A stretch of DNA of 64,000 nt from Chlorokybus atmophyticus (GCA_009103225.1 RHPI01000461.1:44545-108544), one strand, 5' to 3'. Shown: positions 6,801 to 61,090, counted from the first letter of the stretch. Notes: a model not told the origin generated them from the sequence alone. Numbers and translations: made by a program.

Positions 6801-7598
<798 letters not shown>

Positions 7599-21062: not shown

Positions 21063-21098
<36 letters not shown>

Positions 21099-21599: not shown

Positions 21600-21646
<47 letters not shown>

Positions 21647-25524: not shown

Positions 25525-28310
25525 AATGCCCCTAATGACAGGATTGTCCAAAAGCCCACAACTATGCACACTCAGATTGCAATCTTGCGTTGGTAACTTG
25601 ATGTGAGCAAGTCGTTGGTGAGGTTCTTCCACACGGTCTGATCCACGTGCTTGACCATGGCCTTGATCTGCTGGCGACCACCTTGAACATCTCCTTCTTG
25701 CCGGCCTGATGAGCGCCTTGAGAGTGGACTCCCACTAGACGGGCTTAATCAACCGCGCATGACACAGTCAGAGTGGTAGATACTGTCACACGATGCATGC
25801 GGGGAGGAGAGTACAGGCATTGCACGCAGTTGTGCACACTGACATGCATGTGTGTCACATTCGTGCGTGTGCATGTGCGCACGTGCGTATGCATGGCAAG
25901 CATACATGCACGGGTGCGCGCGCAAGCTTTGCCCACTGAGTCGCTCAGTGCATTAGTGCGTGTGCACTGTGCACACGCACGCACGCATAGGCGTGACTGC
26001 AAGGGCGCGTATCCTTGGTACGCTTAACGCACCTGTTTCATACGCGCTTGCAGTCACTGTTGTACGGTGCATGCGACACCGCAATGACAACAGCAGCCCA
26101 CACAAGTCCATAATTCTGTCCATCCCGCACCTGCCTCAACAGCAGTTCCGGAATGCATATGCTCTTCATGTCGGAAACGCTTTTCCGTGACGTTGCTGTA
26201 GATGGGGACGACAGGATCTTTCCGCCACAATCAATCACAGCGCGACAAGAGACTTGTTCGCGGGATGCATCAGAGACGTGTGGAAACTGTCGCTCACCTG
26301 CGGGTATGGTTACATGTGTGCGTGAGCGCGTGGATACATACGAATACACACGCTCCACATGCACGTGCACATGCCCACAGGCGTATATGTGTGTGTTGGT
26401 ATGAGTTTGTGTATGTGTACCCACGTACAAGTGTTGGCATGTATGTGTGTGTGCTCGTATGTGGTTGAGAGCATGTCAACTCCGCATTGCACACCGCCAG
26501 ATCAGTAGCACACATGGCGCCTTTCTGCGTGCTACTCTTCTGGCCAACTTGCCAAGGCATCCATAGCGGCCTACGCATAGTTAAGAGATTGTACACATTA
26601 CTTAATGCCATCGTTATGGCAGTGGTAGTGGTGGAAGAGAGGTGGTTGGCGACCGCAAGGATGGTGTCCGCGGGGAGACTCTTCTCTGCCTGTGGATGAC
26701 GTTTGCCTGTGAGGTGTAGCAACAACAACAACAGCAACGACAATAACCACAACAACTACCTTGCACACACCTGGTCAGTGAGAGGGCGTACGTCGGCATC
26801 GTCCAGGCCAAAAGCCTCTCGCGCTGCCGCCACTTGCTTTCCACACGCGCCTTCACCAGCTGCAAGAGCAACAAGGAATGGTTGGAACACACACACAAAT
26901 ACACACACCCGCGCACACGCATGCGCAGACGCATGCACACACGTGTGTACTCATAACCGAACATGCACACGCATACGTACACATGTGCGTATGCCTGCAT
27001 GCAGCCACATACGCCCACAACAGCGCATACACGCACGTGTACCTAGAAGGCCACAAGTACACAAGTACACCCACCCTGAGGGCACCCTTGAATGACAGCG
27101 CGCCCGCGAACACGAGCGCCAGGTACTCGCCCAGCGACAGACCCGCCGCGGCACTGCACCTTGGTCTCCACCAGCTTTCGGCCTGCAACACACACAAGTC
27201 AACATGCAAGTGTGAGAGAGGCGTAGGATGCGCGCGTGATTGTGTCCGCGTGCATGTATCTGTGTGTTGGTGCATGTGTCTGGGTGCGTGCTTGCTCCGA
27301 TGTGTATATGTGTTCTTGTGTGTGTCAACCAGTGGTCCATCGCATCAACCGATGCACACAACCCCTTGCCTTGATCTGCTCAAAGGGGGTGAGGGCGGCG
27401 AGCTGCGCGTACTTGGTGTCGTTGAGCTGGTCGTCCGCAATCAGCTTTGTTTTTGTCATAGCCAACAACCTCCTTGGCCTCGGCAAGCATGGCCTTCACC
27501 GCAGGGAGCCTCAACTCTCTTGAAGGCACACAAGCACCAACGTGCACGCACACAGTGTGAGCGAACCACCAACACCCTCCAAAGAGCTCCTAATCTCCCT
27601 CACAACACCATCTCCCATGCACGCACAATGAGCATACCGATTGCTTGGGACCTCCGCCCTGAACACAGGAATGCGAGTGGGCTGGAGAGGTCTTTGGGTA
27701 GTGCCGCAGTATTGTTGCCATTGCTGTTGCCAAAATTGTCATCCACCTTCTTCCCCTCCATCTGCGCCCTCCAGGCTGGGAGCTCCTCCTTCTCAGCTCC
27801 AGGTAGGGATGCTTATAGTCCTTGTTCCATGCCTTAAGGATGTGCCAGCCCATAGTCGTGGAGTGCACAGCAGTCGCCCAATGTCCTCGTGGGGATCCCT
27901 CACCTTGTCCGCAACGGCATACTTGGTGTCAAGAGACTTGAGCTTGGCCTAGACTTGAGCTAGGCCTGGACGACTCCACTGAAGATGCCAGAGGAGGTTC
28001 TCAACAGGGTAGATGTAAGGGTCATAGAGTTCGTCTTGGTGGGGTCAGCGCCTTCTCTAGCAACAACAACAACAGCAACAACAACAACAAAAACCGATGG
28101 TTTTGTTGCAACAGTTACCGGGTACTTATTGCAAAGGGGTAGGAGAAAGGGGCTAGGGGGGCAGTGCTTTGACTGTTATTGTCACTGTTGCAGCACTAAC
28201 ATCAATCACTCTTGTTATTGTCGCTGCAACTCCAGCATATTGACACAACAACAACTACACTGACTGTTGGTCTAAGGAGGTTCAATCTAAGGAGGGTCTA
28301 AGGAGAAGCG
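25525..28310 (-). pseudogene. 5'-truncated, decayed copy 1 of the Ank-MAT gene
   Basis: Homology to parent intron 1, exon 3 onward and the 3' flank (e.g. GGCGCTGACCCCACCAAGACGAAC, GGTCTGTCGCTGGGCGAGTACCTGGCG, GGGAGTCCACTCTCAAG), with many indels and stops. Exons 1-2 are absent. Confidence 0.9.
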
Positions 28311-28572
28311 GGAGACGGGGCAAGGGGTGTTGTCAATGATGCACGCAACTCACTTTATAATTTACAATTGTAAATGGATGTACCCAACGTCAATGGCTCT
28401 ACATATGTCATTGCACATTACACAGTAAAATACACACAAACAACACAACAAGCACTCGCTTCAATCACACCTCACCCCTTGATTTGAGCGGAGATGACTT
28501 TCAGCCAAGGCTGCTGTGAAGCAGTTGATGGGAGCAGAAACCTAACAACATCCATGTGATGCTGCCAATAGC

Positions 28573-30860
28573 TTACGCCACTTGCGTTGAAGCGTTGTCA
28601 GTTGATGATACCCTCTGAAAAACACTTGGCGCCAAAGCAAATACCATAAGCGTTATCCTTGGTTAACACGCCACAACAATATGACAGAAAAATATGACAC
28701 AAACATGTCAGTTGTTGACGTGTCATGATGGAATGACACATGCAACACGCTGAACGTGACGACGTGAACAGGAGGTGCACAACACTCACCGAAGCACGTT
28801 CACGCCATACAGCAAGGTGCGCAGAAGTCAGTGCAGTTACCACCATTGCCTCACCGTTGTCGGGGCCGAAAGCAAGTTCGTCAATATCACGTGCCCAATC
28901 GGAAGAGCACCGAATGCCCAACAGATTCGCAGCAATCAGCGCATCAAATGCTTCGGGCGGTATTACCCGCTGTAGCTGTTCCGCATTCACAGCCTTATAT
29001 GGCGAGTTGAGGATTGCAGTGACGGCTGTTTCAAGATGCTTCCTCTCATACCCTGCACTGCCCAGCGGGGTATACCCGCGTTGCACTCTGGATCGAATAT
29101 CCCGAAGGACACTTCGAACAGCTGCACGACAAACAACCATCATCAACCAGGATGCCATTCAAAGCCTCTTGATCTCATAGTAGTTCAATCAACCAGATGC
29201 GTTACTTCCAGCGACATGGCACCAAAACAAAATCAATGAATGCCATATGCCAATCATGCAACAATCATGCTGTTACTCATGGTGACACGCACCTTTTTGC
29301 CATGAACCAAACAGCACATAGCTGACAGCGGCATTCCTAAGAACACCCGCATTTCCACCACATGCCTACATGCAAATCACCATCAGCACACCGAGCCTGC
29401 ATTGACTTGAGTACAAGCAACAATTAACATGTGCAATGTGTACCCACATTGTAGATTATTCTCCACTCAGCGTCACCTGGAGCAGTTGTCCCGAGCGATT
29501 GCAATTGGCCAGAAGTGAACCCTCGCGCCTCTGATTCTGTAAACTCACCGATCGCATAGGTTTGATAAAATTCCGCACCTACATCTGCACACACGCCAGC
29601 CATGCACTTAAGCATGGTGCTGTCACGCGCCCTCTTGACAGGGCGAATCTGAGCCTGGTCCAGTAGCAAGTACTCACAAGCTTTATCGTTGCCTTCACAT
29701 AGCAAGAGACAAGGCACATGTAGTATTCTCACACTTACTCTGCTCCATCCAGCTAATAAAGGCAGAATCTGAAGTGGCGAGTATCACGTGGGCACGCTTT
29801 TGCTGCTTCGTGTTGAGCACGAGAAAACCCACCAGTCTTTTAGGTCGTCGGGGTATTCCTTGGACCAGTCCATGATAACATTAGCATAATCGATGACTAG
29901 CACAGGGATACCCGTTGCTGTCAAAGTGCCTGCCTTCCGTGCCGCCTCCCATGCATCCAGCAGAGCATTGTAGGCCTGTAAGACCGACTGCAGGGAGGTG
30001 GGCACTGACGGCTTGCCCAAAAACCGGTCAACAAGTGCATCCATAATCAAAGACAAAACACCCAGCCCTGAAGTGATTAATGCCCCATCTGGCATCTTGC
30101 GCAGCACCCTAGGAAACTGTGTGGCCCACGCTGCAGTGGCTTTTTGTGGCAGTAGAGAAGCAATTGCGGGCAAAGCAACTTGGATCAAAGCGTCCGCCAT
30201 GTAGCCATGCGTGCGCATTGCCGTCATTCTGCAATCAATGTAGCTGCGGGTGCCTTCCGGACCGCTTCGCTGCACAAAAGCCTCCAAGATCTTGGTTTTG
30301 CCACAATTGCGCGGACCGTGAATAACGGTAATGCCTTTGGGGCAACCGCTGCACAGTTTTTCCAGCTGTTCCAACTCATATTCGCGGCCAAAGAGTCCCC
30401 CTTGTCCGCTGCCTCCTGCGGGACAGGTGTATAATTCCTCAACTGTCCATTGCACTGCAAATGACACGGCTAGCTTGTCGACTACGCATACACCAAAAAA
30501 GCAGGTCATCAAGCAAGGCATGAGACTCAGACCCAAACTGCAATGCGCACCAGCAAAGGTCTTGGCACTGCCGCTGTTGCCGGCAGGTGCCGCAGTTGCG
30601 CTCACAACGGTTGTCCAGCGCGGAGTAGCGGCAGAGGGCACAATGGCATGGCGTAGGTGCTTCAACTCTGATTGACGTCGTTGATGCTGAAGGTGGGAGG
30701 AGGCAGGAGCAGAAGAAGTCATGCTGCCCAGGACACAGCAAGCACGATGCTCTCTCACACCTCCACATGCTTGCAGACTAAATCTGGCACTACCTAGGAG
30801 AGGACCGGGCCTGTTGTTGGCAACCGCTGCCGGCAGCATCGCACATGCAGACGACGCCAT
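28573..30860 (-). pseudogene. P-loop ATPase paralog A (ATPase_2/AAA_16-like), frameshifted
   Basis: Six exons collinear with the 44377-46779 copy. Walker A is GPRNCGKT and Walker B reads VLVIDYAN. There is a 1-nt deletion at about 29836-29837 (AAA GA CTG versus AAA GCA CTG). The remaining exons are open and TAA is at 28575-28573. Confidence 0.85.
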
Positions 30861-31589
30861 GATCTTATTCACCGCTCCAACCGAGCGCAAAATGACGGCT
30901 CTGCGGCAAACAAGCACGCAATGTCAGTTCTGCTCGTGCGTCACACAAGCACGTGCGCGCGCGTGCTTGTGAAAGAGACTACCAACAGTATTATGTTCTA
31001 GCTGCGTGATGATGCATACCATGCAATGACAGCCATGCATACCATGCGAGTGACAGCTAAGTTTGAACAGGTGAGCTGAGGATAAACAAGCAAGGACTTA
31101 GACAACCCTGTGAAATAGCTAACATTACAATACACACGTCGAAAGAGAAAAACCCAGACGTGCTTGTGGTGTGCTGGCGTGCGACAACTGGCAGTGCTGA
31201 TGCAAAATGCAAGACAACAGGAGGTCATGCCTTTGTTTGACTAGTGCCAGTCGACACACACGCCCAATGCAAAGGCACAGACATGCTCACAGGAGCAATG
31301 ATGGGGCAGGTGACTTGCTACTAAATGCATGCCCCGAAAAACAGCTGGACAGATATGAATTTAAATATGAATTTAAGCAATACGCAAACCAATGATGACT
31401 GTGAAACCCATTGCATACCTTGCGTTGCAGTCTCTTTGAAGCCAATATGCAGCAGTGGACACACACCAACTTGTCACCAACAAAGGAAGTGACGTCTGCA
31501 GCAGTTCAGGCATTAGTGACCAATTGACAGTGTTGCAATGAACGTTTCACCCACCCCCACCCACCCCCGCACCCGCCCGCCCACACGCA

Positions 31590-31753
31590 CGCGCGAGAGA
31601 GAGATCGAGAGAGAAAGAGAAAGAGAGAGAGAGAGCGAGAGAGAGCGAGAGAGAGCGAGAGAGAGCGAGAGAGAGAGAGCGAGAGAGAGAGAGAGAGAGC
31701 GAGCGGGAGCGAGCGAGCGAGCGAGAGAGAGCGAGAGAGCGAGAGAGCGAGAG

Positions 31754-31824
<71 letters not shown>

Positions 31825-32026
31825 NNNNNNNNNNNNNNNNNNNNNNNNNNNNNNNNNNNNNNNNNNNNNNNNNNNNNNNNNNNNNNNNNNNNNNNNNNNN
31901 NNNNNNNNNNNNNNNNNNNNNNNNNNNNNNNNNNNNNNNNNNNNNNNNNNNNNNNNNNNNNNNNNNNNNNNNNNNNNNNNNNNNNNNNNNNNNNNNNNNN
32001 NNNNNNNNNNNNNNNNNNNNNNNNNN

Positions 32027-32075
<49 letters not shown>
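31590..32075. repeat. (GA)n/(GAGC) microsatellite spanning an N gap
   Basis: GA repeats flank a run of about 200 N. Confidence 0.95.
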
Positions 32076-32077
<2 letters not shown>

Positions 32078-32149
32078 TCTGCAACACACTAGGTACGCAC
32101 AAACCCATCACGTGAGAAACTCCCTCCCTCCGCCCCGCCCGCCCGCCCG

Positions 32150-33255
32150 GCTTTAGCTTATTCGGATGGCGCTGAAGCTAGGAGTTTCCATCGGCAGGCG
32201 GTGGTCGAGTGAAGCATGTGCACGCCAGTAGGTGCCTGGCGTGCTGTTTGTGATTGTTATCAGCAAGGTCTGCGCTGCCGTCGTTGACGGCGTCGTTGTC
32301 GCCGCCGCCAAAGGACACTTCGGCTAACTTTGTGCCCCTGGACGCTCACAAAGACGAGCAAAACCACAGGTGCAGGCTTACTTGCTTGCCAAGTGTACTC
32401 AGCACTGCTCCTTGAGCCGACTATGTAGGCGGAATGTGTCTTGCATTGCACTTTTCTTCTACAGCATGCGCTCTCGATTAGCTGGCAGCGCTTGTTTGCT
32501 GAACAACTGCCCCAGGCTGCCATTGTGCCACAGCAGGCCACAGCTGCATGGGTGAGCAGCGAATTGCAGTTGGTTCGCCGCTTGACTTTGATTCCATGCG
32601 AGAGCTTTTTCATCTAGTGATTGGTTTGTGTGGTTTGTGGCTAGCAGTGGTGGCTTGCGGGCGGGTAGGAAGCAGCGCAGTCCGGCAGCTGCTTCAAGTG
32701 CTTCAACAACCTGAAAATCGCAAGGTGCAACCACCTGCAGAGCGTGTAGGAACACACTGAGCTATTTAGCATGCACCGCGCAACAGCTTGCCTGTCCTGA
32801 GCACTTGTACAAGCAAGGTTTGGTTATTTCCTTGTCGCCACAGCAACAGCTGAATGTAGCTGCTCACGAAGCAGCCTCTCAAGCGATTGCCCTTACATCC
32901 TCCACGCATGCACCATATAAGGCAACCCCAGATGCCACCCATTAGTAACTTCGTGCAGGTACAAGGAAACCCAACGCTTGCTGACTGCCGCGCAGAGTGC
33001 AAGCGCATCACGTTGCTGCTGCAAAACCACTTACGCCAGCTGGCAGATGTCACAGCGCTGTGTGCGATCTTGCCAATGCTGTCAGCGCTCAGCGCAATAC
33101 GTCAAGCGATGCGAAGGAGGATGGTGACGTTGGCAGCAAAGAGGGCGGTATCACACGCCAGGATTTGTGGGAGGGTGAGCACCACTACAGCTGCCTGAAC
33201 CCGTGTCCAACACATGGTGTGCTGAGGATGTCTGTGGTTGGCCTTCAGTACCCCA
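32150..33255 (-). repeat. Block X, copy 1 (inverted)
   Basis: Reverse complement matches 33845-34900 and 51228-52300 (e.g. AGCCGAAGTGTCCTTTGGCGGCGGCGAC, CAAGCGCTGCCAGCT, GAAGCACTTGAAGCAGCTGCC). Confidence 0.85.
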
Positions 33256-33840
33256 CACACACTGTGCACCTGGTCAATGAGAGGGCGCATGTCGGCGTCG
33301 TCGAGGCTGATGACCGGAAGCGACTTGTGTGCGGGCGGCCCAGCTGCGCCGCAGCCGCCAAGCTCTCCGCACACCTTCACAAGCTGCATGAGCAACACAG
33401 CAGCAATTGGCTGGAACACACACGTAAACACTGACATATGCTCGTACGCACACATGCGTGGGCACGCGTGTGTCCACAAACCAACCTTGAGAGCATTCTC
33501 GAATGACAGTGCGCCCGCGAACACGAGTGCTGGTACTTGCCCAATGACAGACCCGCCGCGGCGCTGCACCTCTCAATCTTCACGGGCCTGTCCGCCTGCG
33601 CCACACAAGTCAACAATGCGTAAGAGAGGTGCAAGAAGGCGGTTGGTGTATATTGACTCTGCAGTTGGTGCGTGTGCGCACGTACTTGTGCACACACGTG
33701 TGTGCGTGTGCGTGTCCACACGCATGGCGCGTGTGTGTGGGGCAATCGATTGCAACACCTTGAACTCCTACACACCGCCCCTTGCCTTGGTTTTCTCAAC
33801 AGCGAGGGCCGCGGTGACCAGCGCAGGCTGGGCGTACTTG
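33256..33840 (-). pseudogene. Internal fragment (copy 2) of the MAT gene, from the end of exon 4 to the start of intron 6
   Basis: Minus strand reads AAGTACGCCCAGCCTGCGCTG...GCGGACAGGCCCGTGAAGATTGAGAGGTGCAGCGCCGCGGCGGGTCTGTCATTGGGC...GACGCCGACATGCGCCCTCTCATTGACCAG|gt, with frameshifts. Confidence 0.9.
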
Positions 33841-33844
33841 ACCT

Positions 33845-34960
33845 GACCTGCCGTGTGAGTCCGCTCTCTTTGCAGCCAACATCACCATGTTCTATTGCAT
33901 TGCGTGCATATGTGCTGAGCGCTGACAGCATTGGCGAGGTCGCGCACAGCGCTCCTGAGATCTGCCAGCTGGCGCGAGTGCCTCCCATTAGCAGCGTAAT
34001 GCGCTCACACTATCTGCGCAGCAAAGAGCAAGCGCTGGGTCTTCTTAAGTTGCAACAATGTGCTGGGACATGGAACATGGGATGTGGTGCCTTACCTGTC
34101 ACATGCGTGGATGATGTGAGGGCAGAGGCTGCTTTGCGAGTAGCTACTAGTAAGCTCTTGCTGTGGCAACAAGCAACCAAACGTTGCTTGTAGATGGCGA
34201 GAGAACAGGCAAGCTGTTGCACGGTGCATGCTTATCAGCTCAGTGTGTTCCCTTTTGCACACTCTGCAACCGTTTGCACCTTGCGAGTTTCAGCCGAGTC
34301 AAGAGAAGCAGCTGCCTGACTGCGCTTCTTCGAACTCGCCGGCAAACAACCACTGCCAGCAACAAACTACACGAACCAAAGGCTACATGAACAATTGCAT
34401 GCATGGAATCATAGTCAAGCCGCGAACCAACTGCAATGCGCTGCTCACCCATGCAGCTGCTGAGTGGCCACAATGGTCTCGGGCAATTGTTCAGCAAACA
34501 AGCGCTGCCAGCTGTTCAAGCGCGTGTGCTGATCGAACACAAGTGCCGCCTTTGAATCGGCTTCAAGGAGCAGTACTCAGCAAGTATGCAAGCGTGCACT
34601 GGTGCTGCAACGCTGCGCTCATCCTGGTAATCGTCGCCCAGGGGCAAAAAGCCAGCCGAAGTGTCCTTTGGCGGCGGCGACAATGACGCTGTCAACGACC
34701 ACGACGACGGCAGCTCCGACGTTGCTGACAACATATCACAAACAGCACAGTACAAACATGGCGTGCACATAATGCTTCAGTCAACCACCGCCTGCTGACG
34801 GAAACTGCTAGCTTCGGCGCAATCCGGCGAAGCTCAGGCTGGGCGGGTGGGCGGAACGGGCGGGAGCTGCTCAGGTGATGGTTCTGTATGTGAACTTTGT
34901 CGCAGAAGGCAGCAAGCGAGTGGCTGCTCAGCTTGGCTGCTCAGCTGGACGCAAGCAGCG
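33845..34960 (+). repeat. Block X, copy 2
   Basis: Reverse complement of 32150-33170 and direct homolog of 51320-52400. Confidence 0.85.
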
Positions 34961-34962
34961 CT

Positions 34963-37041
<2,079 letters not shown>

Positions 37042-37042
37042 N

Positions 37043-39133: not shown

Positions 39134-39399
39134 GCTACTAACAATATCACATGGGTATTGTTAGTAATTTTTGGTTCCCATCGTAAACCACTTTACCGCA
39201 GCCTTTGCTGAAAGGCAACTCCTCCAAGTGTCCAAAGGATGAGGTCTGGTTGAAGCGGGTGCTTATTGGAATAGTCGTGTGTGTTTTGCTGTGTACTCTG
39301 CAGTGACATATGTAGAGCCATTGACCTTGTGTGTGTTGTGTACTCCATTTAACATTTGTATAGAAAGGTGTGAGTTGTGTCCATCATCGACAACACCGC

Positions 39400-46779: not shown

Positions 46780-47019
46780 GCTACTGATGGATGTTGTTAG
46801 TGGGTTTCGGGTCCCATCGTAAACCGCTTCACAGCAGCCTTGACTGAAAGGCAACTCATCCCAGCGTCCAAAGGATGAGGTCTGGTTGAAGCGAGTGCTT
46901 GTTGTGATGTTGGTGTGTGTTTTGCTGTGTTGTGTACTCTGCAATGACATACGTAGAGCCATTGACCTTGTGTGTGTTGTGTATTTAAGTTGAATCCTCC
47001 TTGGATTAACTGTCCTTAG

Positions 47020-49750
47020 CCTGACATTTAGTTGTGCAATTGTTGTGTATTTTGCTGTTGTTGCAGCGACAGTGACAAAATTGATGTGATTGCTGTTGGT
47101 GCTGCAACAATAACTGTCACAGCACTGCCCCCCCTAGGCTTTCTCCTACCCCTTCCCATTCCCCCTTTGCAACAGTTACCGTTGTTGTTGTTGTTGTTGT
47201 TGTTGGCGAGCAAGGCGCTGACCCCACAAAGACGAACGCTACGACCCTAACATCAACCCTGGCGAGAACCTACCCTGGCAGATTCAGTAGAGTGCAGTCG
47301 TCCAGACCAAGTTCAAGTCCCTTGACGCCAAGTATGCCGCCATGGCCAAGGTGAGGGATCCCCATGAGGACATTGGCGACTGGTGGGCACTCTACGACTA
47401 CGGGCTGGACATCCTCAAGGCATGGAATGAGGACTGCAAGCATCCCTACCCCCGGAGCTGGAGCTGAGACGCAAGAAGGAGGAGGAGATCACAGCCTGGA
47501 GGGAAGGAAGGTGGGTGACCATGTTGGCAACAGCAATGGGAACCATACCGCGCCTTACTACCTGAAGATCTATCCAGCCCAGTCGTGTTCCTCTTGCCGG
47601 GGCAGGGGTCCCAAGCGATTGGCATGCTCAAGGTGCGCAAGGGAGATGGCCGTGAGGTTGTTTACGATGAGTTGTTGGAGATGGTGGGGGTTGCTCGCAC
47701 GATGCATATGCGTGTGCACACATGTGTGCATGTATGTGTGCGGATACAGTTGAGTGTGCGCGCTTTTGCACGTGTGTGTTGGCTTCCTTGAAGCTAGGAA
47801 GCTCACATTGTGTATAGTGTAAAGACAATGTTCAGGAGAGTTTGAGGCTCCCTGTAGTGAAATGCCATGCTCGCCAAGGAGGTTCTGGGCTACAACGTTG
47901 AAAAGCTGATTGCAGACGGCCCTGTCAACCATCTCAACGACACCAAGTACGCCCAGCTTGTGCTGCTCACCGCGGCCCTCTTCGCCATCAAGAAAACCAA
48001 GGCAAGGGGTTGCTTGCAGGAGTTGCAAACAATTGTCACACACACACGCCATGCAATGCGGACACATACGCATATGCACATGCACGCATGTGTGCGCACA
48101 AGTACGTGCACACGCACGCATACGCGTGTGCATAGGCACACACGCGCGCATCATCTGGAAAGTCAATACCATCCAACTGTCTTCTTGCACCTCTCTCACA
48201 CTTGCATGTTGACTTGTGCGGCGCAGGCGGAAAGGCCCGTGAAGATGAAGAAATGAAGCGCGGCGGGTCTGTCATTGGGCAAGTACCCAGCACTCGCTTT
48301 CGCGGGCGCATTGTCGTTTGAGAACGCCCTCAAGGTGGGTTTGTGGATACGCGCGCGCGCACGCATGTGTGTGTACGTGTATATGTCAGTGTTTATGTGT
48401 GTGTTCCAACCATATGCTGTTGTGTTGCTCCTGCAGCTTGTGAAGTTGTGCGGAGAGCATGGCGGCAGCGGCGCAGCGCAGCCGCCCGGACAAGATGCTT
48501 TCGGTCATCGGCGTTGACAACGCAGACATACGCCCTCTCGTTGACCAGGTGCGTAGTGTTGTTGTCATCATTGGTATTGGTAGTGGTGATAGACCAAACT
48601 TGCAATGCCATACACAGGCGAAGAGCCTCCCCGCGGACACCGTACTCGAGGTCGCCAACTACCTCTCTTCTCAAGGCAGAGTCGTCTCGGGACACAAGGT
48701 GTGCCTTGATGTGGGTGTCGACACACCACCACCACCACCACCATAACAACAGCATCAAGTAATGTGTCAAGCTTCTCAACTACGCGCAGGCTGCACTGGA
48801 TGCCTCTGGCAAGCTGGCGATACAGAAGGGCGCCATGCGCGCTACTCTTCTAGAGGTGTGCAATGCGGAGTTCACAAGCTCTCAACCACATACGAGCATA
48901 CACGTACATACATGCCCACATTTGTACATGGGCATCAGACACAAACATCATGCAGATACACACTCACATGTGGGCATGTGCACTTGCATGCAGAGCGTGT
49001 GTATCTGCATGTATCCACGTACTCACGCACACAAGTCACCACGCCCGCAGGTGAGCAGCGGTTTGCACGTCGTTGATGCGCCTGCGAGTGAGTCCTTTGT
49101 TGACGGCTCTGTCGGCTGTGGCGTGGAAGGATCCCGTTGTCCCCGTCTACAGCAAGCTCTTCGCATCGCAAATGGCGTCATGTGATTGCCATTTGCGATG
49201 CGAAGAGCATCCCGAACTGCTGTCGCCACAGGTGCGGGGGGGTGTCAGCTTGTGTGGGGCAAGTGTGTGTGCTGAGGTGTGTATCTGCTGTACAACACAC
49301 ATTGATACCCGCAAGCACTTATGACCTCATGCAACAAGCTGTTCAACAATACGCGCATGCGCAAGTGTACGCGCGCACGCTTACGCACATGCATGCAGGT
49401 ACATCCGCCCAGGACCACACATACGCGCGCACTCACGTCCACCTGCGTATGTGCGAGCGCATGCACGTGCACACACACGCACGCAATGACACACATGAAA
49501 TCACACATCATCACCCCGCGGTGTGTATGCTGCGCTGCGTGCCTAGCACGCCGTCGATTGGATGGAACGGCGCGTGTGCAGTTGTTACCGAGCCCATCCA
49601 GTGGGAGTCCACATTCAGGACGCTAATCCAGGCCAACAAGGAGAACATGCTCGAGGTGGGGTCTTGAGCAGCAGAGCAAGGCCATGGTCAAGCATGGACC
49701 AGAGAGTGTGGAAGGGCGTCACCAACATCTCAGTTGAGCGTTTTTATGTG
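47020..49750 (+). pseudogene. 5'-truncated, decayed copy 4 of the Ank-MAT gene
   Basis: Collinear with the parent from intron 1 and exon 3 to the last exon, with stops (CAGTAGAG, GAAATGAAGCG, GGGTCTTGAGCAG) and indels. Confidence 0.92.
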
Positions 49751-50569
49751 TGACTCATAGAGGCAACAACTTCACATCAAGCTAACGACCCAACATTATT
49801 GCAAAATGAGTGTGCATAGTTGTGAGCTTTTGGACAGCCCTGTCATCAGCAGCGACGTATGACTTACTCAAACACAAGGCAGCATTCATGTGTGCAAGCC
49901 AAGGGGCAGGATTGGGCGTGATGGATGACAGTCTGTGCATATGATTGCGCTCACTCTGCGGAGGCACCTGCAACAACGTGGTTCGCATCAACAATAACAT
50001 CAATGTGGCTAGGTTTGCACATTGCTACTGAGCATAAGTGTTTTGGCGTGCGCAATGTATGCGCGGGCCTTGTTCACGTTTCTGAAATGACACAAGTCGA
50101 CTCGCGCCCAGCGAGAATTGCAATCACATGCTCACAGGAGCGATGATGGGGCACGCGAACTTCCACTAGACGCGTGCACCTCAACAAGCAACCAGACAGG
50201 GGATGAATGAAAGCACTACACGAAGGAGGAGTGCAATCTTGCGCTCGTTCCAGCTCATGCGATTGTGTTGTGTCTCGCGCCATGCCGCAGTCCCACTTTA
50301 ACAAGTAAGCAATGACACGGCACACGTTACTACCTTGCCTGGGACTGAGCTGCTCTCGCATGCTGAACCAGCCCCAGCATTACCAGCATCATGTCTTCCC
50401 TCCTTGCTGCCAACAGCGCACCTGAGTTCCAAGCCTCCCTGACGGTAACATATGTTGTTGCGCACCCAATTGTTCAAATGGTGGTGCGCATCGCAGCTGC
50501 TTGCTGAGAGATTGTCCGACACGCATGTGTGCACAGGCAAACGCTGCCAACAGCCACATCAATCAACCA

Positions 50570-51125
50570 AGACAACCTCCCTGCGGGACGTTAGTGACCA
50601 GACCATTGTGGAGTTTCTCGGCTCGTCTTTGGAGATGCGCGAGGGCGTGCAGGAGACTGATGCCACAACTACGCACTCGCCCACATCACCCTTGGGCTCG
50701 CCATTTTCAACCACACCCACATCATCGACAACACTCACACCCCCATCAGATGTGGGGGTGCTGATGGGTCCACAGTTGATGAGGTTGTGGATGACAGCGG
50801 GCTCATCGCAGGCATCGTCATTGGCACGCTTGCTGCGGCATGTCGCCAATAACAGCCCTCGTCTCTCCTTCCTCTGCAAGAGAAGGGGCGCAACCGACAA
50901 AGGTTAAGGAGGATTCCAACATGGCAAGCGCATGCTGGACAGCGTGGTCATTATGGCTTCGGCCACGCAACGGGCTGACCGGTATGATGCTGCTACTGCA
51001 ATTTGAACACAGGATGCAGCCTCTCAATACCTGAGCAAAACTTCCGCTAGTTGGCAGCTTCTTGCACAGAACATTAGCCGCTCACCTGCTGGCCTGAAGC
51101 GGTCGTTGGAACTCGTAGGTCATGA
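50570..51125 (+). pseudogene. Block V copy 2 plus block U: relic of a single-pass membrane protein
   Basis: TTTHSPTSPLGSPFSTTPTSSTT...GADGSTVDEVVDDSGLIAGIVIGTLAAA, followed (with frameshifts) by AITALVS and FLCKRRG. The U segment recurs at 60920-61090. Confidence 0.5.
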
Positions 51126-51227
51126 GCCTTATAGCAGGCCTCCCAAGACGCGGATTCGTCAAGCTCAATGTGTTACCTCATGGCGTCCTGCATTGCAAAC
51201 TCCACTAAAACCTTTGCAAAGCCAACC

Positions 51228-53060
51228 AGTACTAAAGGCCAACCACAGACACCCTCAGCGAACCATGTGTTGAACACGGATATAAGCAGCTGTAGTCGTG
51301 CTTACCTTCCCACAAATCCCGGAGTGTGAAGCCGCTGTTTGCTGCCAACATGACCGTTCTCCTTCACATCGCTCGAGTGGTTTTGCAGCAGCGACGATGC
51401 GCTCGCACTCCGCGCAGCAATCAGCAACCATTGGGTTCTTTACAAGCTGCACGAAGTTGCTAATGGGTGGCATCTGGGCTGTGCCTTATATGTTGCATGA
51501 GTGGATGTAAGGGCAATCGCTTGAAAGGCTGCTTCGCGAGCAGCTACAACAAGCTCTTGCTGTGGCGACAAGCATAAAACCAAACCTTGCTTGCAAAAGT
51601 GCTCAGACTAGGCAAGCTGTTGTGCAGTGCATGCCAATAAGCTCAGTGTTCCTGCACCGTGCTGTTTGCACCGTGCTGTTTTCAGGCTGTTGACGCACTT
51701 GAAGCAGCTGCCTGACTGCGCTGCTTCTACCCGCCCGCAAGCGACCATTGCCAACAACAAACCACACGAATCAAACGCTAGATGAAAGGCTTTCGCATGG
51801 AAAGAAGTCAAGTGGCGAATCAACTGCAATACAAATGCTATTGACCAAGCTGCTGCGGCTACAGCTGAAGTGGCCACAATGGCCGTCTGGGGTTGTTCAG
51901 CAATCAAGCGCTGCCAGCTGTTCAAGTGCGCATGCTGTGGAAGACACGTGCAATGCATGAGACATTCCGCCTTGTACAGTCGGCTCAAGAAGCAGTACTT
52001 AGCACACTTAGCAAGCAAGTAAGCGTGCACCTGTGGGTGCGCTCGTCCTTGTGAGTATCGTCCAGGGGCACCAAGCCAGCCGAAGTCCTTTGGCGGCGGC
52101 GACAACAACAATGTCAATGATTGGGACGGCGACTCAGACATTGCTGACATCAGGTTACACCTAGCACAGCACTGACATGGTGTGCACATGCTTCAATCAA
52201 CCACCACCGCCTGCCGGAAATTCCCAACTTCAGCGCAATCCGGCAAAGCTCAGGCGCCGGGCGGGCGGGAAGGGAGAAAGCTGCTCAGGTGATGGATTTT
52301 GTATGTGTGCCTAGTGCGTTGCAAAAGGCAGCGAGCGCGTGGCTGCTTGCTTGCGGCAAGCTTATTAGCTGAGCAGCTTGCCGCAACCAAGCAGCTTGCC
52401 TCCTGCGGCTGCGGCTCTCGCCCTCTCGCTCTCTGCGTGCGTGCGTGCATTCGTGCGTGTCTGTTCCGCGCTCGCTGCAACACCGCTAATACCAATCACC
52501 TGACGCTTGAACTGCTGCAGACTGTACTACCTTCTTTTGTGGTCGAGTTGCTGTGTGCCACTGCTGCATACTGGCTGCCCACTCGCCCTATTGCAGGGGA
52601 GACTCCAACGCAAGGTGTGCATTGGGTTTGACAGTCATCATCTGTGTTCACATGATCTGTCATTCATCCCTGCAAGGGACAGTGTCTGCTTGTGTTGGGG
52701 CGCGCGTCTAGTGGAAACTCACATGTCCCATCATCGCTGCTGTGAGCATTTCTGCGCATTCGCTCTGAGCGTGTGTGTCAACTTGTATCGTTCCAAACGC
52801 ACGCAAGACACATGTTTGACTTCCTTGGTGTCTTGCAACTGGCATCTGCTGTGCCAGGTTGCGTGTCACTCGCAAGCAATTCGCATCGCACAGCATGCAA
52901 ATGACAACTGCCATTGATCTGTCTGCACTGTGTTGTTCCACGTGTTGATCCGTATGTGTGGCTAGCTGTCACAGGGTCTATCTACGGCTGTTTGCATATA
53001 CTCGTCAGCTCACCCTGTTTGAACATGACTGTCACATGCACGGTACGCATCCTTATACAG
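51228..53060 (+). repeat. Block X copy 3 followed by block W: start of a fourth unit
   Basis: 51228-52300 matches X, and 52470-53060 matches the reverse complement of 30990-31540. Confidence 0.85.
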
Positions 53061-53067
53061 CAAAAAC

Positions 53068-53644
<577 letters not shown>

Positions 53645-54159
53645 NCGAGCCATTATCATGTTTGCGCTGAAAGTGAAAAGCAACTGTGCGAATCCGTGGC
53701 GTGTGACTGTTGACACCATCCTCCATGTTATGCCATAGTCTTCAAGTTTCGTTGTTGTTGACAACTGCTGCTGCTGCTGCAATAGTAGTAGTATGCTACG
53801 TAGTCCATAGCTTCGTGGGACGTAGTAGTACGACTACGTAGTCCATAACTCCAGCTGCAGCGCCAGCAGCTGCTGCAATGATGTCGTGGTCGTTGAGGTT
53901 TTGTAATTGCGCTGCATCACAGCCGCAGTTGCAGTTGGCATTGCTGTTACAATGGTGACTTGTTCTGTTGTTATGTTGATTGCTTCTGTACGGTGATGAC
54001 GTTCTTGCAGGGAGGAGTAGCCTATGAATCACTGGTCATTTGTCGGGCATTTGCATTAAGCGCAGTGCGACGCTGTTGTGGGTTGCTCTCCCTTGTCCCG
54101 TGCAGCTCAAGACCAGCGAAGTCCGTCCAGGTCCGTTGTGTGAGCAGTTGGCTATGTGG

Positions 54160-55830
54160 TTGTTGCTTCCACTTACACGTGAAGGCAATATTTAATGCAA
54201 GAGCCAGAATGGCAGCACAAGCTGGAGAGAGCTACGGGAAAAGTGTGCAGACGAGAGGAGCTGTTAGGAACCTTGGATCTCTCTTGCTGTAATGAGCCCA
54301 CAGGTGAGAGAACATGGAAACACAGAGAGAAAGACAATGCTGGTCGTTGTTACAACGATTTATCCTGAGTGCGCACCCGCACCCACATGTGTACTCTCAC
54401 TACCCTACTCCCCTCTCCCTTCCTGCTCGTCCCCCCGTCTCACCCAACAGTCCCTTTCCCCCTGCCCCTTAAACCATCGGCATTGCAGCCCTTCCCGCGA
54501 CAGCTGCCAGCCCTGGACTGTCGCAGTGGGCTGTTGACAGCCGGGGCCTGTTGATCTACCCACCAAACAGCCCTCGATTGTCAACCACTAACAGTCAAGG
54601 ACCACAACTGTTGTTCTCAATTCAGCAAGGTGCGCGCAAGTCTGCAAAGGCTGCCCTCTAACTTGTTGTGGTGTGTGTATGCGAGCCTCTCAAACACATA
54701 CACACACCAACCGCCGGGCTGATGGTGTGTGTTCGATTATCAATCTGAGAACAGGCTCTTTGCACCCATCCGCTTCCGCCACCCTCACTGCTGACAAGAA
54801 CTCTATCCTCTCTGCATATTCTAACGTTGTGCAGCGCTCTGTCTTCAATGTTGTCAAGGCCCTCTAGGAGCAGGCATGTCTATATGTGTCTGAGTGTTCG
54901 CGCATGTGTGCGTGCGTGCGCATGCGTGAACAATCACGGCTGTCAGTAACCTGTTGCACGCGTTTGTGTTGACAATCCTGACTGTCAATAACACAGTTTT
55001 GTCCGCCAGCAATCAAGTGTGTGTCTCCACCAGCAGTCCCTGTCGGGCATCTGCAAGTCAAGACAAGTTGAGCACATAGAGGCACATGCACAAGCATGTG
55101 CACACACAACAATACACTTACACGCACGCGAGTGCGTGCAAAGGAATAGTTAAAGCACAGACATGTTCAGACCAGTAGTGCATGCGTGCACCCACCCACC
55201 CATCCACCCACCCACCCACACCGCAGCAACAACTCTCTTTTCGCGCAGGTGTGCGTGGTGACCAGACTGGGGCGCCCACCACCCTGATAGCAACGTGGTG
55301 TATGTGTTCGGTGCCCACGTCCTGGGCCCCAGGATGCACCGAATGCGTTCTGCACGTTCTACGCGGGCACAAGTGGTGGGAACAGCTGCGAAGCTCATGT
55401 CGGCATGCAAGAAGTATAGGGAGGGGCGGGCCGNNNNNNNNNNNNNNNNNNNNNNNNNNNNNNNNNNNNNNNNNNNNNNNNNNNNNNNNNNNNNNNNNNN
55501 NNNNNNNNNNNNNNNNNNNNNNNNNNNNNNNNNNNNNNNNNNNNNNNNNNNNNNNNNNNNNNNNNNNNNNNNNNNNNNNNNNNNNNNNNNNNNNNNNNNN
55601 NNNNNNNNNNNNNGGGCAAGGTCAATGAGTGAGGAGCGCATGCACAAGGCTATAAAGGAGGTAAGAGCTGTCATGTGTGGCTATACGACCGTCGTTGTTG
55701 ACAGTGTGGACTATCACCTGTCGCCCGCGCGCGTGCACACACATTGCACTTCGCATGTTACTTACACATGCGCACATGAGCAGGTCCTGGCCACTAGCCG
55801 AGGTGGCAGTGCTTGGGAGAGGGAATAGAG
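54160..55830 (+). pseudogene. Degenerate multi-exon coding sequence of unknown origin
   Basis: Exon-like, splice-bounded segments translate as RQYLMQEPEWQHKLERATGKVCRREELLGTLDLSCC, RVCVDNPDCQ*HSFVRQQS and CAW*PDWGAHHPDSNVVYVFGAHVLGPRMHRMRSARSTRAQVVGTAAKLMSACKKY, with stops and an N gap. Confidence 0.35.
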
Positions 55831-56780
55831 AGCGGTCATTAGGTAGCAGGTACAACTCCTGGCGATGAGTTTGCAGTCATTGTCATTTGTTTCACTATTG
55901 CAGTAGGATACGCTCGTCTGCATGTGTGCAACCTGCTTGTGTGATGTAGGTGGCTAGATTGCTGAGTTATTGGGATTGCTGGAGCGCGTGGTTGCTGTAG
56001 GTTTGACCGTTTGGTATGTATAATCAGCACATGCTTCACATGTGCTTGTATTGTTGTCGCTGCGGGATGCTATGTGCATGGTGTATGGCGTACCTTGCTA
56101 GCGGTCGGTAGAATACTTATGGCCGTGTGAGTGATTGCCAGTAGGCATGCATACACGGCTGGGCACGCATGCATGCATGGTCGTAGGCTGATGAATGTCA
56201 CCAGGCCACGAGGATGGCCAGGTACTATGCCATCCTCATGGCCAAGTGGTTGTCAACGGCGGCGGCAGTAAAGTAAAACCATAGCTATGGCTTGGTGACC
56301 GTGCAATGTGGATCTTGTGCTGGTCGCCTTCAGGCTAGCGGCGTGGCCTAGTGCTATTTATACGGAGCAGCAGCTCATCAATAATGGAGGTCGAACCATC
56401 AGCTGCGTCTTTATTGCTGCAGCTGACCGCATGTAAACGTCACAAGCACACTTTTAAGACCACACTATCAACCGTCAACAGTCCATGAATACATGGTGGT
56501 CCGACAGCCGACTATAACACACCATGAATGGTACAAACATTGTGAACGCGCATTTTAACTCAGAATTGACTATGCATGTTTGCCAACTCGCTTAATCTCA
56601 TGGCAATCGCGCACCAACCATGGTGCGAACCCAAGAAACATGCCTGTTTTGCTGTGAAACGTGGATCATACCTTGCTCGGCTGTTATGACAGCCAAACCA
56701 TCCATTGTCCGCAGATTTCATATAGTAGGGGTAAACTCTAGTCCAGCGATACGGACCATCTATGGTGCTTGTATAAAAAT

Positions 56781-57255
56781 TGACGTGCCACGCGTCATTG
56801 AGCAACTATGAGTTAGCGATCGTAGATACCCATGTCAAGTTAACCAATGACAGGCATGTCTAACTATTGCACGATGTCGGGCTGCGCGGGTCATGTGCTG
56901 ATCCTCTTCGAGTTGCCATAGTGGTGCTTTGGCGATGTTGGGAGATTGATGCTGAAGTGTCCTTCTTGTTGCTGAAAATAAGGGTGAAGACCGCCTTTTG
57001 GCAAAGAGTACCCCCAAAATAAATATTGACGTGCCGCGCGTCATTGAGCAAATGCGAGTCAGCGATCGTAGACACTCACATCAAGTTGATCCATGATAAG
57101 CCTGTCTAGCTATTGCAGGATGTCGGGCTGCGAGAGTCGTGTGCTGATCCTCCTCGAGTTGCCACAGTGGTGTTTTGCCGATGCTTGAAAATTGATGCTA
57201 AAGTGTCCGGATCCTTTTTGCTGCTGAATACAAGGTTGAAGGCCGCCTTTTTGGA
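56781..57255. repeat. Diverged tandem duplication, period 246 bp
   Basis: TGACGTGCC(A/G)CGCGTCATTGAGCAA starts at 56781 and at 57027, and the homology continues to AGACCGCCTTTT / AGGCCGCCTTTT. Confidence 0.85.
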
Positions 57256-58356
57256 CAAGCCCCTACTAGCCTACATACAGAGATGCTGCTACGTAGCAGC
57301 ATTTCTGTGTATACACTGGGATGCACCTAGCACACCATCCACATGAATGCAACCAAAAGTTCATGCCAATGAGAAACATGGCAAAATAAGTTATGAAGCT
57401 TAAATGCTAAGATGTGAATTTGTGCAATACACACTCAACGCCAGCAGCCAGGCACAAGCAAGCAAAGCAGAGCAAGCAATAAAGAGGGGCTCAGAGCAAC
57501 GCTATCAAACCAATACGATACTTTTATACCATAGGACAGTAGAACGCAAGGCAAGACGGGGCAAGGCAGGCAAGGTAGGGATCACCACCTGCGCAACAGA
57601 GGTGCTTGTTTCAGGACCGGGCTTGGCAGCAGGAGCAAAGGACGTGACGACGTTGTGTGTAACAGTCAAGGCCAAATCTCGTGATTTTCATGGCCATTTT
57701 AGGCCTTATTTGTGAGGTATCATGTTTTTCATGACTTGTGGCGGATATCGGCGAGTTGCGAGTCTGCCGCAGATATCGACCGGCCCAGGGCCAGTCTGGA
57801 AGACGCCAGAAAACGGAGGGCCAGTCGAGAAGGGCTCGACCAGATTTCTGGAAGGGCCTGGCGCCAAGTAGTATAACTTGACCATATGAGCAGCAAATGA
57901 GGAGATCTTTGGTGCGTCGGAAAGGTCTAGAAGTGTACTACAAGATTCTGCAAGAATATCTTAGCTTCTAGTTTTGTCTAGCGCTAGAAGCGTCTAGACA
58001 GTAGCATGTGCAGACTGGTAGGTAAAAGTGACATTCTACAATTTGCAATACAACCTTTAGCTCCCTAGTTTCTTGTGTGCAAGCTTAGTGGTGGTTAGCA
58101 GGGGTTGCTAGCGTGTGTCCACTGGTGTGTGCTTGCTTGTGTGACGATCCAAGGCGCTACACAAGTCGGTGTGTAGCTTCGAGCGCATGCGCGTACGCGA
58201 GTGGCGGGGCGCGCGTGTGTGCTTGGCAGAGGGGGCAAGGTTTTGGTGTGAATACCGTGTCTTGGTGAGAGAGTTGTTGATTGGACCAACTCATAGGTGA
58301 CAAGGCACGAGCACCGTTACTGTCACAAATTGGGATAAATTGTGACAGACCTCACT

Positions 58357-58358
<2 letters not shown>

Positions 58359-58404
<46 letters not shown>

Positions 58405-58405
58405 N

Positions 58406-58477
<72 letters not shown>
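58359..58477. repeat. (GT)n microsatellite with an internal N
   Basis: Direct reading of the sequence. Confidence 0.95.
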
Positions 58478-58478
<1 letters not shown>

Positions 58479-59327: not shown

Positions 59328-59873
59328 ACACGCACACAACCTCACCATACATGTCAAGGCGGACGCGCTCAGCTAGCATATGACCCACCTAATGCCGCAC
59401 CTGGTGTGAAAACGGTGACTGCGGCGGTCACCGTTTCCATAAGCACGCGCAGTAGTATGCAGCAGCAGCAACAGCACACATCAACAATCAGATACAATAA
59501 AAAAAGCTGCAGGGGTAACTACACTATGTGCATGCTTGTAGCTAAGTGCATGTTGGGTGAAGGACACATCAAAGGCAGATAGGCAAGCAAGTAGTAGAGC
59601 AAGGACAAACAGTGGACCTGTTAGTCACAGCCGCTTGTTAGCGGAGGTAGCAGGAGGGTGTAGCAGCAACAGCACATTACGATAGGTAGAGGCAACAGGA
59701 AGGTCAGGAGCAGGGCGGTGATGTTGTGTTATGCAGTGCTGTAATGTAATGGCTGAAGTTGCAGGCGCCTCCATGAGTGGTATGTACATTCACAGCTGGT
59801 GGTTAAAGGCATACTCTTATACCGTGTTCACCCAAGCACAGTGCGCTACACATACAGCCCTTAATAACATTCG

Positions 59874-61090
59874 GCACTCGCTTTCGCGGGCGCATTGTCG
59901 TTTGAGAACGCCCTCAAGGTGGGTTTGTGGATACGCGCGCGCGCACGCATGTGTGTGTACGTGTATATGTCAGTGTTTATGTGTGTGTTCCAACCATATG
60001 CTGTTGTGTTGCTCCTGCAGCTTGTGAAGTTGTGCGGAGAGCATGACGGCAGCGGCGCAGCGCAGCTGCCCGGACAAGATGCTTTCGGTCATTGGCCTTG
60101 ACGACGCAGACATACACCCTCTCATTGACCAGGTGCGTGGTGTGTGTGGGTAAATGTTGTTGTTGTCGTTGTCATTGGTAGTGGTGATACCAGACATGCA
60201 ATGCCATTCATAGGCGAAGAGCCTTTCCGGACAATGTGCTTGAAGTAGCCAACTACCTCTCTTCTCAAGGCAGCATTGTCTCAGGACACAAGGTGTGCCT
60301 TGATGTGGTTGTCGACACAACATAAATACCTACCACCACCACCATAACAACAGGATAAGGTAATGTGTAAAGCTTCTTAACTACGCAGGCCGCTATGGAT
60401 GCCTTTGGCACTCTGGCGATACAAAAGGGCGCCATGCGTGCATTTCTAGAGGTGTGCAATGCGGAGTTCACAAGCTTTCAACCACATACGAGCACACACA
60501 TACATGCCCACAGTTGTACGCGGGTAAACATACCCAAACGTCATACAACTATACACTTACATGTGGGCATGTGGGCATGTGCACGTGCATGCAGAGCGTG
60601 TGTATGTATATCTGCATGTATCCACGTATTCACGCAAACATGCAATCGCGCCCGCAGGTGAGCAGCGATTTTCACTCGTCGCTGATGCGTCACGCGAGCG
60701 AGTCTCTGTCGATGGCTTTGCCGGCTGTGGCGTGGAAGCATCCCGTTGTCCCCGTTTACAGCAACGTCACGTGAACGCCGTTCCCGATGCGAAGAGCATC
60801 CCGGAACTGTTGCCGCCACAGGAGCGGGGGTGTCAGCTTGTGTGGGGCAAGTGTGTGTATCTGCTGTACAACACACATTAATACCCGCAAGCACTTATGA
60901 CCTCATGCAGCAGACCGTTTTGATGCCGCCACTGCAGTCTGAACACAGGATGCAGCCACTGATATTTGAGCAAAATATCCGCTAGTTGGCAGCTTCTTGC
61001 ACAGAACATCAGCCGCTCACCTGGCCTGAAGCGGTCGTTGGAAGTGGCTATAGCCTTAGGCTTCTTTGATCCATTCGTAGGTCATGAGCC
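59874..61090 (+). pseudogene. MAT fragment copy 5 (end of exon 5 to intron 8) fused to block U
   Basis: Matches 48290-49335 and then switches at about 60915 to the sequence at 50980-51130. Confidence 0.9.

Follow-up and report, generated by a model that had tools for sequence, protein, structure and literature searches.

What keeps one part of a repeatedly duplicated DNA segment readable as a gene while the part next to it decays? This question is raised by a 64,000-nucleotide stretch of Chlorokybus atmophyticus DNA (JGI Chlat1 scaffold Chrsp360; RHPI01000461.1:44545-108544), referred to here as the window. A composite cassette recurs in it: a segment X, a (CT)n tract, a segment W, a gene encoding a P-loop ATPase, a relic of a malonyl-CoA:ACP transacylase gene (FabD/MCAT, denoted MAT), and a 3' flank V/U. 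The window is nuclear DNA of an early-branching streptophyte alga, since a protein search with an ATPase exon matched gene models on Chrsp360 (S05330, S05324, and S05332) and on Chrsp12, four Chlorokybus proteins in all. An initial annotation, made from the sequence alone, had proposed this order of parts and an inverted, tandem, truncated, and fragmentary layout of the copies. Both are recovered by self-BLAST of the window with (CT)n tracts masked (the unmasked comparison was swamped by (CT)n). The cassette is defined by 44 long self-matches of 74-88% identity, which make up one inverted unit (A), two tandem units (B and C), and three partial units (D, E, and G).

The locus is likely a Chlorokybus-specific segmental-duplication cluster, i.e., an ordinary birth-and-death gene family. 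Its paralogs have diverged by 12-26%, two of them carry catalytic lesions, and a dead fragment (P0009) lies next to an intact paralog (P0002) on Chrsp12. The birth-and-death array of ATPases suggested by the initial annotation is real, but the family, described there as uncharacterised, is not new to eukaryotes (PMC6652019, PMC6629376). The duplicated unit consists of a six-exon nuclear PF01637 ATPase gene, a copy of the neighbouring ankyrin-FabD (Ank-FabD) gene starting within an ankyrin repeat, and non-coding flanks. One inverted and two or more tandem duplications multiplied it in place, presumably through unequal or non-allelic recombination, to which the long (CT)n tracts bordering the units may have contributed. 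After duplication the copies swapped patches by gene conversion. The FabD pieces, which share two frameshifting deletions, decayed while the essential intact FabD gene stayed next door. The ATPase copies were kept open by selection against frameshifts and stops, but their amino acids evolve fast, above all in the Walker A-B linker. The locus offers an internally controlled example of what follows duplication: a full gene keeps its frame, and a truncated passenger gains about 17 frameshifts in the same blocks.

Frame maintenance, decay, and gene conversion

No premature stop is found in any of the three ATPase copies. The six-exon model of the initial annotation is exact for copy C, whose translation is identical to the JGI protein P0004, and the single frameshift reported there is a 1-bp deletion in copy A at about 29841. 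The JGI model of copy A (P0001) uses a 14-nt micro-exon (29739-29752) that skips this frameshift and drops the conserved sensor-1 block. When the old frame is followed past the deletion, the block NTKQ..HVILATSDSAF is perfectly conserved, so the deletion is either very recent or a sequencing error. In copy B the 5' ~195 nt of exon 1, the start codon, and W are unassembled. Its JGI model (P0003) starts at a Met inside intron 1 (37261) because the real 5' end is missing at a scaffold join.

The FabD halves of the same units are full of lesions, as had been noted for five MAT copies. Within about 1.3 kb of former exon, each of the full-length relics A, B, and C has accumulated 16-17 indels that shift the frame and 3-4 in-frame stops. 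Overlooked at that stage was a sixth copy, the intact parent at 19928-22105 (gene F), which adjoins the array. Gene F retains the catalytic motifs FPGQGSQ, GLSLGEY, and GGFHTSL, which are degraded in the relics.

The ratio of indels to substitutions is 0.015-0.022 in the ATPase exons, 0.10-0.14 in the ATPase introns, and 0.10-0.13 in the MAT relics. The exon indels measure 3, 6, 3, 45 (35+10), and 51 (35+16) nt and are all net in-frame, the 1-bp deletion in copy A being the exception. The introns, at half the exon length, have about 37 indels of arbitrary length. Neutrality would predict 27-37 exon indels for the B-C pair; three net events are observed, all in-frame. In a neutral substitution simulation 3.8-5 premature stops are expected per lineage, with a probability of no stop of 0.5-2%. 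The ratio of nonsynonymous to synonymous substitution rates (dN/dS, or omega) estimated by NG86 is 0.55 for A-B, 0.57 for A-C, and 0.38 for B-C, with confidence intervals below 1. The corresponding maximum-likelihood estimates by GY94 are 0.68, 0.73, and 0.47 for the whole coding sequence and 0.58, 0.49, and 0.34 for the core. Because indels are few, stops are absent, and omega is below 1, we conclude that the frames have been kept open by selection in all three copies.

Constraint on the amino acids themselves is weak. Substitution at codon positions 1 and 2 of the ATPases is nearly as rapid as in the relics. The Walker A-B linker (45060-45290, codons ~185-262 of copy C) is the most rapidly diverging part, with p = 0.35-0.56 between copies. 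In copy C it contains a 45-51-nt in-frame insertion and is modelled at a predicted local distance difference test score (pLDDT) of 50-65. Its GY94 omega is 1.2-3.0, significant in one pair only and obtained from a poorly alignable stretch. The earlier statement that the ATPases are preserved thus holds for the open frames; it does not extend to divergence, which is about equal in exons and introns, or to the catalytic residues, one of which has been lost in each of copies A and B.

Several observations weigh against this account of the locus. Exon nucleotide divergence (K 0.23-0.26) is about the same as intron divergence (K 0.22-0.31), and the B-C ATPases are more diverged than the adjacent B-C relics (K 0.13-0.16). 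The MAT relics, taken as a neutral control, have an omega of 0.33 for A versus B/C. Substitution rates are therefore weak evidence for constraint, the more so as gene conversion confounds them, and some lesions in A and B could have been mended by conversion from copy C with no selection acting on them. The 1-bp deletion in copy A could be a sequencing error. In addition, the arrangement of the parts on either side of the joins at 31825-32026, 37042, and 53645, both order and orientation, is provisional.

Gene conversion accounts for two of these observations, namely the relic omega of 0.33 and the excess of B-C ATPase divergence over B-C relic divergence. Informative sites of the ATPases group B with C against A in exon 1 and 5' exon 2, A with B against C in mid exon 2, A with C against B in exons 3-4, and again B with C against A from exon 5 onward. 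Mosaicism extends to the MAT region, where the relics cluster apart from gene F in exon 1, but gene F is as near to B/C as A is in exons 3-6. Both halves of the cassette are gene-conversion mosaics, with the live gene F taking part in the exchange. Introns and relics are for this reason not clean neutral yardsticks here, the role that the initial annotation had proposed for them. The relics were dropped as a neutral omega control, their low value being attributed to mosaicism with gene F.

Decay of the MAT pieces needs no special explanation, since they begin inside an ankyrin repeat, at the boundary of the first listed exon of gene F, and share disabling deletions. Two deletions are common to relics A, B, and C: one of 4 bp at about 22084 of gene F, ahead of the FabD start, and one of 1 bp at about 20359, in FabD exon 7. 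Further lesions are common to the relics of B, C, E, and G. The deletions common to A, B, and C indicate that the MAT piece was probably disabled already in the common ancestor of the units. A slight chance is left for a functional period of the cassette's FabD copy.

Catalytic residues of the ATPase copies

Copy C is the only complete copy and has all catalytic motifs (Walker A GPRNCGKT, Walker B LLVIDE), in line with the consensus sequences GxxxxGK[ST] and hhhhDE. In copy B Walker A reads GPVNCGIT(K), with Lys replaced by Ile. Copy A has, in addition to its frameshift, the Walker B sequence VLVIDY, in which DE has become DY (Glu to Tyr). Among 37 non-local homologs the Walker A Lys is kept in 97% and the Walker B Glu in 89%. 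Deviations at family-conserved residues (14 of 66 in A, 16 of 60 in B, and 12 of 69 in C) are mostly common to all local copies. Copy C is thus the one canonical ATPase in the window; P0002 on Chrsp12 is canonical as well. Judged by their motifs, copies A and B would be either young pseudogenes or non-hydrolysing partner subunits.

It is possible, though doubtful, that copy C alone works and that the open frames of A and B reflect youth and repeated conversion from C instead of selection. The catalytic losses, the frameshift in A, and the unassembled 5' end of B would all agree with this, as would the patched JGI models (the micro-exon of A and the intronic start codon of B). Conversion tracts are also clear, between B and C at the 5' end and from exon 5 onward and between A and C in exons 3-4. 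However, the frames are open even where the copies differ most and have not been converted (mid exon 2, p = 0.25-0.5), against an overall expectation of 27-37 indels, and A and B retain nearly all other family-conserved residues. The block beyond the lesion of A is intact, so that this lesion is very young or a sequencing error, and the missing 5' end of B falls at a scaffold join. Selection on the frames of all three copies remains the preferred reading. The comparison of copy C with A and B, each of which has lost one catalytic residue and kept the remainder, gives a handle for probing the function of the family.

Family, fold, and known relatives

Copy C matches PF01637 (ATPase_2, "archaeal ATPase") with 80.9 bits (cutoff 33.2) over profile positions 1-222 of 225, and exon-level matches to this profile are found for all three copies. 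PF21690, the MJ1010-like second domain that is accessory and common in archaeal clusters, had no match in ten family members at E<=1e-3. The first protein search saw the four Chlorokybus proteins only; the wider family became visible by profile search, which gave 551 relatives at E<=1e-3. The relatives that were looked up are mainly algal and come from Coccomyxa, Chromochloris, Myrmecia, Nannochloris/"Chlorella" desiccata, Tetrabaena, Tribonema, a glaucophyte, a chlamydial metagenome-assembled genome (MAG), and environmental contigs. The nearest Atlas cluster to copy C is "MJ0632". The chlamydial protein, P0125 (NGX52451.1, from a Candidatus Anoxychlamydiales MAG), stands among the algal relatives with E about 1e-14 and could bear on the debated prokaryotic origin of eukaryotic "archaeal ATPases".

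With further paralogs on Chrsp104, Chrsp17, and Chrsp308, the Chlorokybus set consists of three clustered and at least five dispersed copies. Chrsp12 has a mini-cluster in which the intact P0002 (Chrsp12S02034) lies next to P0009 (Chrsp12S02080), a fragment of 143 aa whose Walker A is dead (GPVNRGTTK) and which is damaged elsewhere too. The Walker A of P0009 resembles that of copy B (GPVNCGITK), and a P-loop-dead lineage may have been copied between scaffolds. The homologs looked up in Myrmecia and Tribonema are single genes amid housekeeping genes, with no array and no FabD neighbour in their 10-kb flanks; in Myrmecia, the contig holds a second, more distant paralog at another place.

Expansions of the "archaeal ATPase" family in algae and plants have been reported, e.g., 26 members in Asterochloris glomerata, 12 in Galdieria sulphuraria, and 7 in Selaginella, in a tree anchored on MJ0632 (PMC6652019). 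The Galdieria family is reported to be fast-evolving and to lie next to every telomere (PMC6629376). Chlorokybus, which is among the earliest-branching streptophytes, joins the algae in which this family is multiplied. Its array is like the published expansions in belonging to PF01637, in its lineage-specific multiplication, and in its fast evolution, a likeness at the level of the family. Unlike them, the Chlorokybus set is small, its units co-duplicate a FabD pseudogene, and its proteins have a probable targeting peptide. As far as the window shows, the array is interstitial, whereas the Galdieria family is subtelomeric.

In an AlphaFold model of copy C, built from a 40-sequence alignment, mean pLDDT is 78.6; residues 1-105 are disordered and residues 106-539 are mostly above 90. 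The top two Foldseek matches are archaeal PF01637 ATPases, PABY2304 (PDB 2qen, E 8e-11) and SSO1545 (PDB 2fna, E 1e-9), with template-modelling scores by target of 0.61 and 0.54. Among solved structures they rank first by sequence as well, though with marginal matches. Like them, copy C has a P-loop domain followed by a C-terminal helical region. The algal ATPases are 13-16% identical to them and differ by having a helical insert of ~150 residues between the two Walker motifs and an N-terminal extension of ~105 residues. MalT, the NRC-type NB-ARC protein NRC3, Orc1/Cdc6, Apaf-1, and CED-4 follow at E 1e-7 to 1e-5. Judged from the model, the protein is an AAA+/STAND-like module with a nucleotide-binding, a helical, and an apparent winged-helix part. 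The ~105-residue N-terminus, rich in Ser, Ala, and Arg and almost without acidic residues, matches no Pfam domain and is probably an organelle-targeting peptide.

Another possible comparison is with Yme2/RNA12 (PF10443), an AAA+ protein of yeast mitochondria. A Coccomyxa homolog matches this profile with 42.5 bits (cutoff 27), and copy C stays below the cutoff at 20.7 bits. Both Yme2/RNA12 and the Chlorokybus ATPases may be organellar. No RRM domain was detected, and the similarity is probably at the superfamily level only.

The initial annotation had drawn an analogy with immunity and incompatibility loci. In such a conflict array the copies would be minimal STAND-like switches under diversifying selection, with the linker as a recognition surface and dead paralogs as partners or decoys, as in clusters of plant NLRs. 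This is unlikely. The core fold does resemble that of STAND NTPases (plant NLR NB-ARC, Apaf-1/CED-4, and MalT), and the paralogs are likewise clustered and fast-diverging, some with degenerate P-loops, of which Chrsp12 has a second such copy. Frames stay open despite near-neutral amino-acid turnover, linker divergence exceeds the neutral level with omega above 1, and the fast-evolving subtelomeric ATPases of Galdieria have been likened to VSG-like families (PMC6629376). However, the Pfam scan and the AlphaFold model of copy C show an ATPase module and a disordered, targeting-like N-terminus, with no sensor repeats (LRR, WD40, or TPR) and no effector domain. Structurally, archaeal PF01637 ATPases match best, and Orc1/Cdc6 proteins match about as well as the STAND NTPases. 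Omega is significantly below 1 overall and in the core, and the linker estimate suffers from the alignment problem mentioned above. PADLOC, which covers prokaryotic defence families, gave short, weak matches only (PDC-S01, 24 bits over 38 residues). The single homologs of Myrmecia and Tribonema among housekeeping genes also speak against the analogy. A more specific version, in which the three ATPases form a hetero-oligomeric, minimal STAND-like switch in an organelle, with C hydrolysing, A and B deliberately "dead" yet kept open by selection, and the linker as the recognition surface, diversified by selection, for NLR-like conflict or surveillance, is likewise improbable. An ordinary birth-and-death family agrees better with these findings.

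Units, joins, and the neighbouring FabD gene

The features of the array are shown in Table 1. Fragment G, at the inversion joint between units A and B, is the leftover of another minus-strand unit.

Table 1. Parts of the duplicated units and of the adjoining FabD gene; positions are counted from the first nucleotide of the window
Unit	Feature	Position	Strand	Basis or remarks
Gene F	Intact parent, FabD/MCAT part, 8 phase-0 exons	19928-22105	-	Introns all GT-AG, no stops
A	MAT relic, all 8 former exons	25560-28026	-	16 frameshifting indels, 3 in-frame stops, 3 broken splice sites
A	ATPase copy A (Chrsp360S05330, P0001)	28573-30860	-	JGI model mapped to window
A	W (ATPase upstream region)	31037-31511	-	69-71% identical to W of C and D
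A	(GA)n with 202-N assembly gap, between X and W	31681-32074		Gap flanked by (GA)n on both sides, no coding sequence
A	X; ~1-kb inverted repeat with X of unit B	32080-33162	-	Self-BLAST
G	MAT fragment, former exons 2-5, at A/B inversion joint	33222-33848	-	Self-BLAST, relic mapping
B	X	33847-34928	+	Self-BLAST
B	2,074-bp 100% pure (CT)n	34967-37040, single N at 37042	+	Zero impurities
B	ATPase copy B (Chrsp360S05324, P0003)	37044-39133	+	JGI model mapped
B	MAT relic	39682-42242	+	16 frameshifting indels, 4 stops
B	3' flank V/U, including ~110-bp segment inverted in W	42304-42971	+	Self-BLAST
C	W	43710-44044	+	Self-BLAST
C	Short (CT)n	44194-44215	+	Self-BLAST map
C	ATPase copy C (Chrsp360S05332, P0004, 539 aa)	44377-46779	+	Translation identical to P0004
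C	Exons 1-6 of ATPase copy C	44377-44683, 44819-45547, 45734-45870, 45955-46027, 46198-46529, 46738-46779	+	
C	MAT relic	47228-49795	+	17 frameshifting indels, 3 stops
C	3' flank V/U	49858-50831	+	Self-BLAST
D (truncated)	X	51376-52347	+	Self-BLAST
D (truncated)	W	52505-52986	+	Self-BLAST
D (truncated)	574-bp pure (CT)n	53070-53643, single N at 53645	+	Unit D ends there in assembly
E	3' half of MAT relic: former exons 4-8 and a bit of 3' flank	59868-61043	+	Self-BLAST
	~110-bp W/V segment copies	31249-31335, 42536-42647, 43664-43755, 50083-50195, 52687-52795		

The initial annotation had also considered a gene-capturing mobile unit. It is very improbable that the ATPase-MAT core is the cargo of a self-copying, non-autonomous transposon. 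Every W contains a ~110-bp segment that recurs in inverse orientation in every V, and these copies bracket the core (43664-43755 and 50083-50195 in unit C); moreover, close paralogs exist on a second scaffold, Chrsp12. However, the arms are 72-76% alike, compared with ~80% for same-side copies, and the segment was found nowhere outside the array in the 64-kb window. The repeated unit reaches past the inverted segments: X and U recur in a constant order, and neighbouring copies adjoin one another head-to-tail or head-to-head, an arrangement that segmental duplication predicts. A Pfam scan of ten open reading frames (ORFs) of X, V, U, and neighbouring DNA gave nothing but Ank in the ORF upstream of gene F; no transposase, reverse-transcriptase, or integrase domain was found, in agreement with the initial annotation, which had seen no transposase in the unit. 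Segmental duplication fits the arrangement better.

An assembly artefact, i.e., collapsed or expanded repeats or wrongly joined haplotypes, is likewise very improbable. The window has seven N runs, and long pure (CT)n tracts end in single Ns exactly at the breaks of B and D. Against this, the copies share identities of only 74-88% and diverge by 12-26% with many indels, far more than haplotypes or read errors would produce; mis-assembled haplotypes, a risk that the initial annotation had pointed out, are thereby ruled out. No gap interrupts the assembly from 37043 to 53644, which holds units B, C, and D, or from 32027 to 37041, which holds the X-G-X palindrome, and independent JGI models exist for all three ATPase genes.

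The joins do affect what can be read from the locus. The gap at 31825-32026 has (GA)n on either side and touches no exon, and the gap at 55434-55613 lies outside all cassette parts. Single Ns at 7576, 37042, and 53645 each lie 1-5 bases from the end of a long (CT)n tract (6804-7576, 34967-37042, and 53070-53645, with lengths of 768, 2074, and 574 bp and 0-1 impurities). Beyond the Ns at 37042 and 53645 the sequence is unrelated to (CT)n, and at 37042 it resumes in mid exon 1 of copy B. We read these single Ns as unclosed scaffold joins. The recurrent pattern of (CT)n followed by N looks like a systematic gap-filling or scaffolding artefact, in which case neither tract lengths nor junctions would be trustworthy. 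Because of these joins the copy number, the start codon and W of copy B, and the end of unit D are not fixed by this assembly. Two practical lessons follow for this array: gene conversion spoils introns and co-duplicated pseudogenes as neutral yardsticks, and (CT)n breaks conceal the true copy number. A long (GT)n tract at 58340-58470, broken by a single N at 58405, appears to be another microsatellite-associated join. A fourth ATPase beyond the (CT)n tract of unit D was also looked for; there is just a 22-bp collinear match to the ATPase leader and no noteworthy tblastn match at E<=10.

For gene F, database scans were run exon by exon, and the spliced sequence was used only to map relics in the window. 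Exon 7 alone matches 30 solved MCAT/AT chains, the best being the human mitochondrial enzyme (2c2n, E=9e-9). Matches to Acyl_transf_1 are collinear along the exons and below threshold, with 14-16 bits per exon and 25.8 bits for a two-exon ORF (cutoff 32.7). The first listed exon runs on in frame, with no stop, from upstream ankyrin-repeat exons that extend to about 23065 and match Ank in Pfam. In the exon 22105-21662 an ankyrin repeat (…YLL|SQGADPTLKTKD…) and a charged linker are joined in frame to FabD/MCAT. The minus strand of 19928-23065 would thus hold a single ORF in which Ank and FabD are fused, a domain arrangement uncommon for FabD/MCAT. The possibility that the ATPase is nested in an Ank-FabD intron, with X or W as relics of the ankyrin exons of gene F, was also considered; no ankyrin-exon relic turned up when 22090-25560 was compared by tblastx with the remainder of the window. 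An Rfam scan of the window gave no family match. In the gene-poor region between units D and E, a unit of ~230 bp occurs twice in tandem at 56773-57251, with 82% identity between the two copies.

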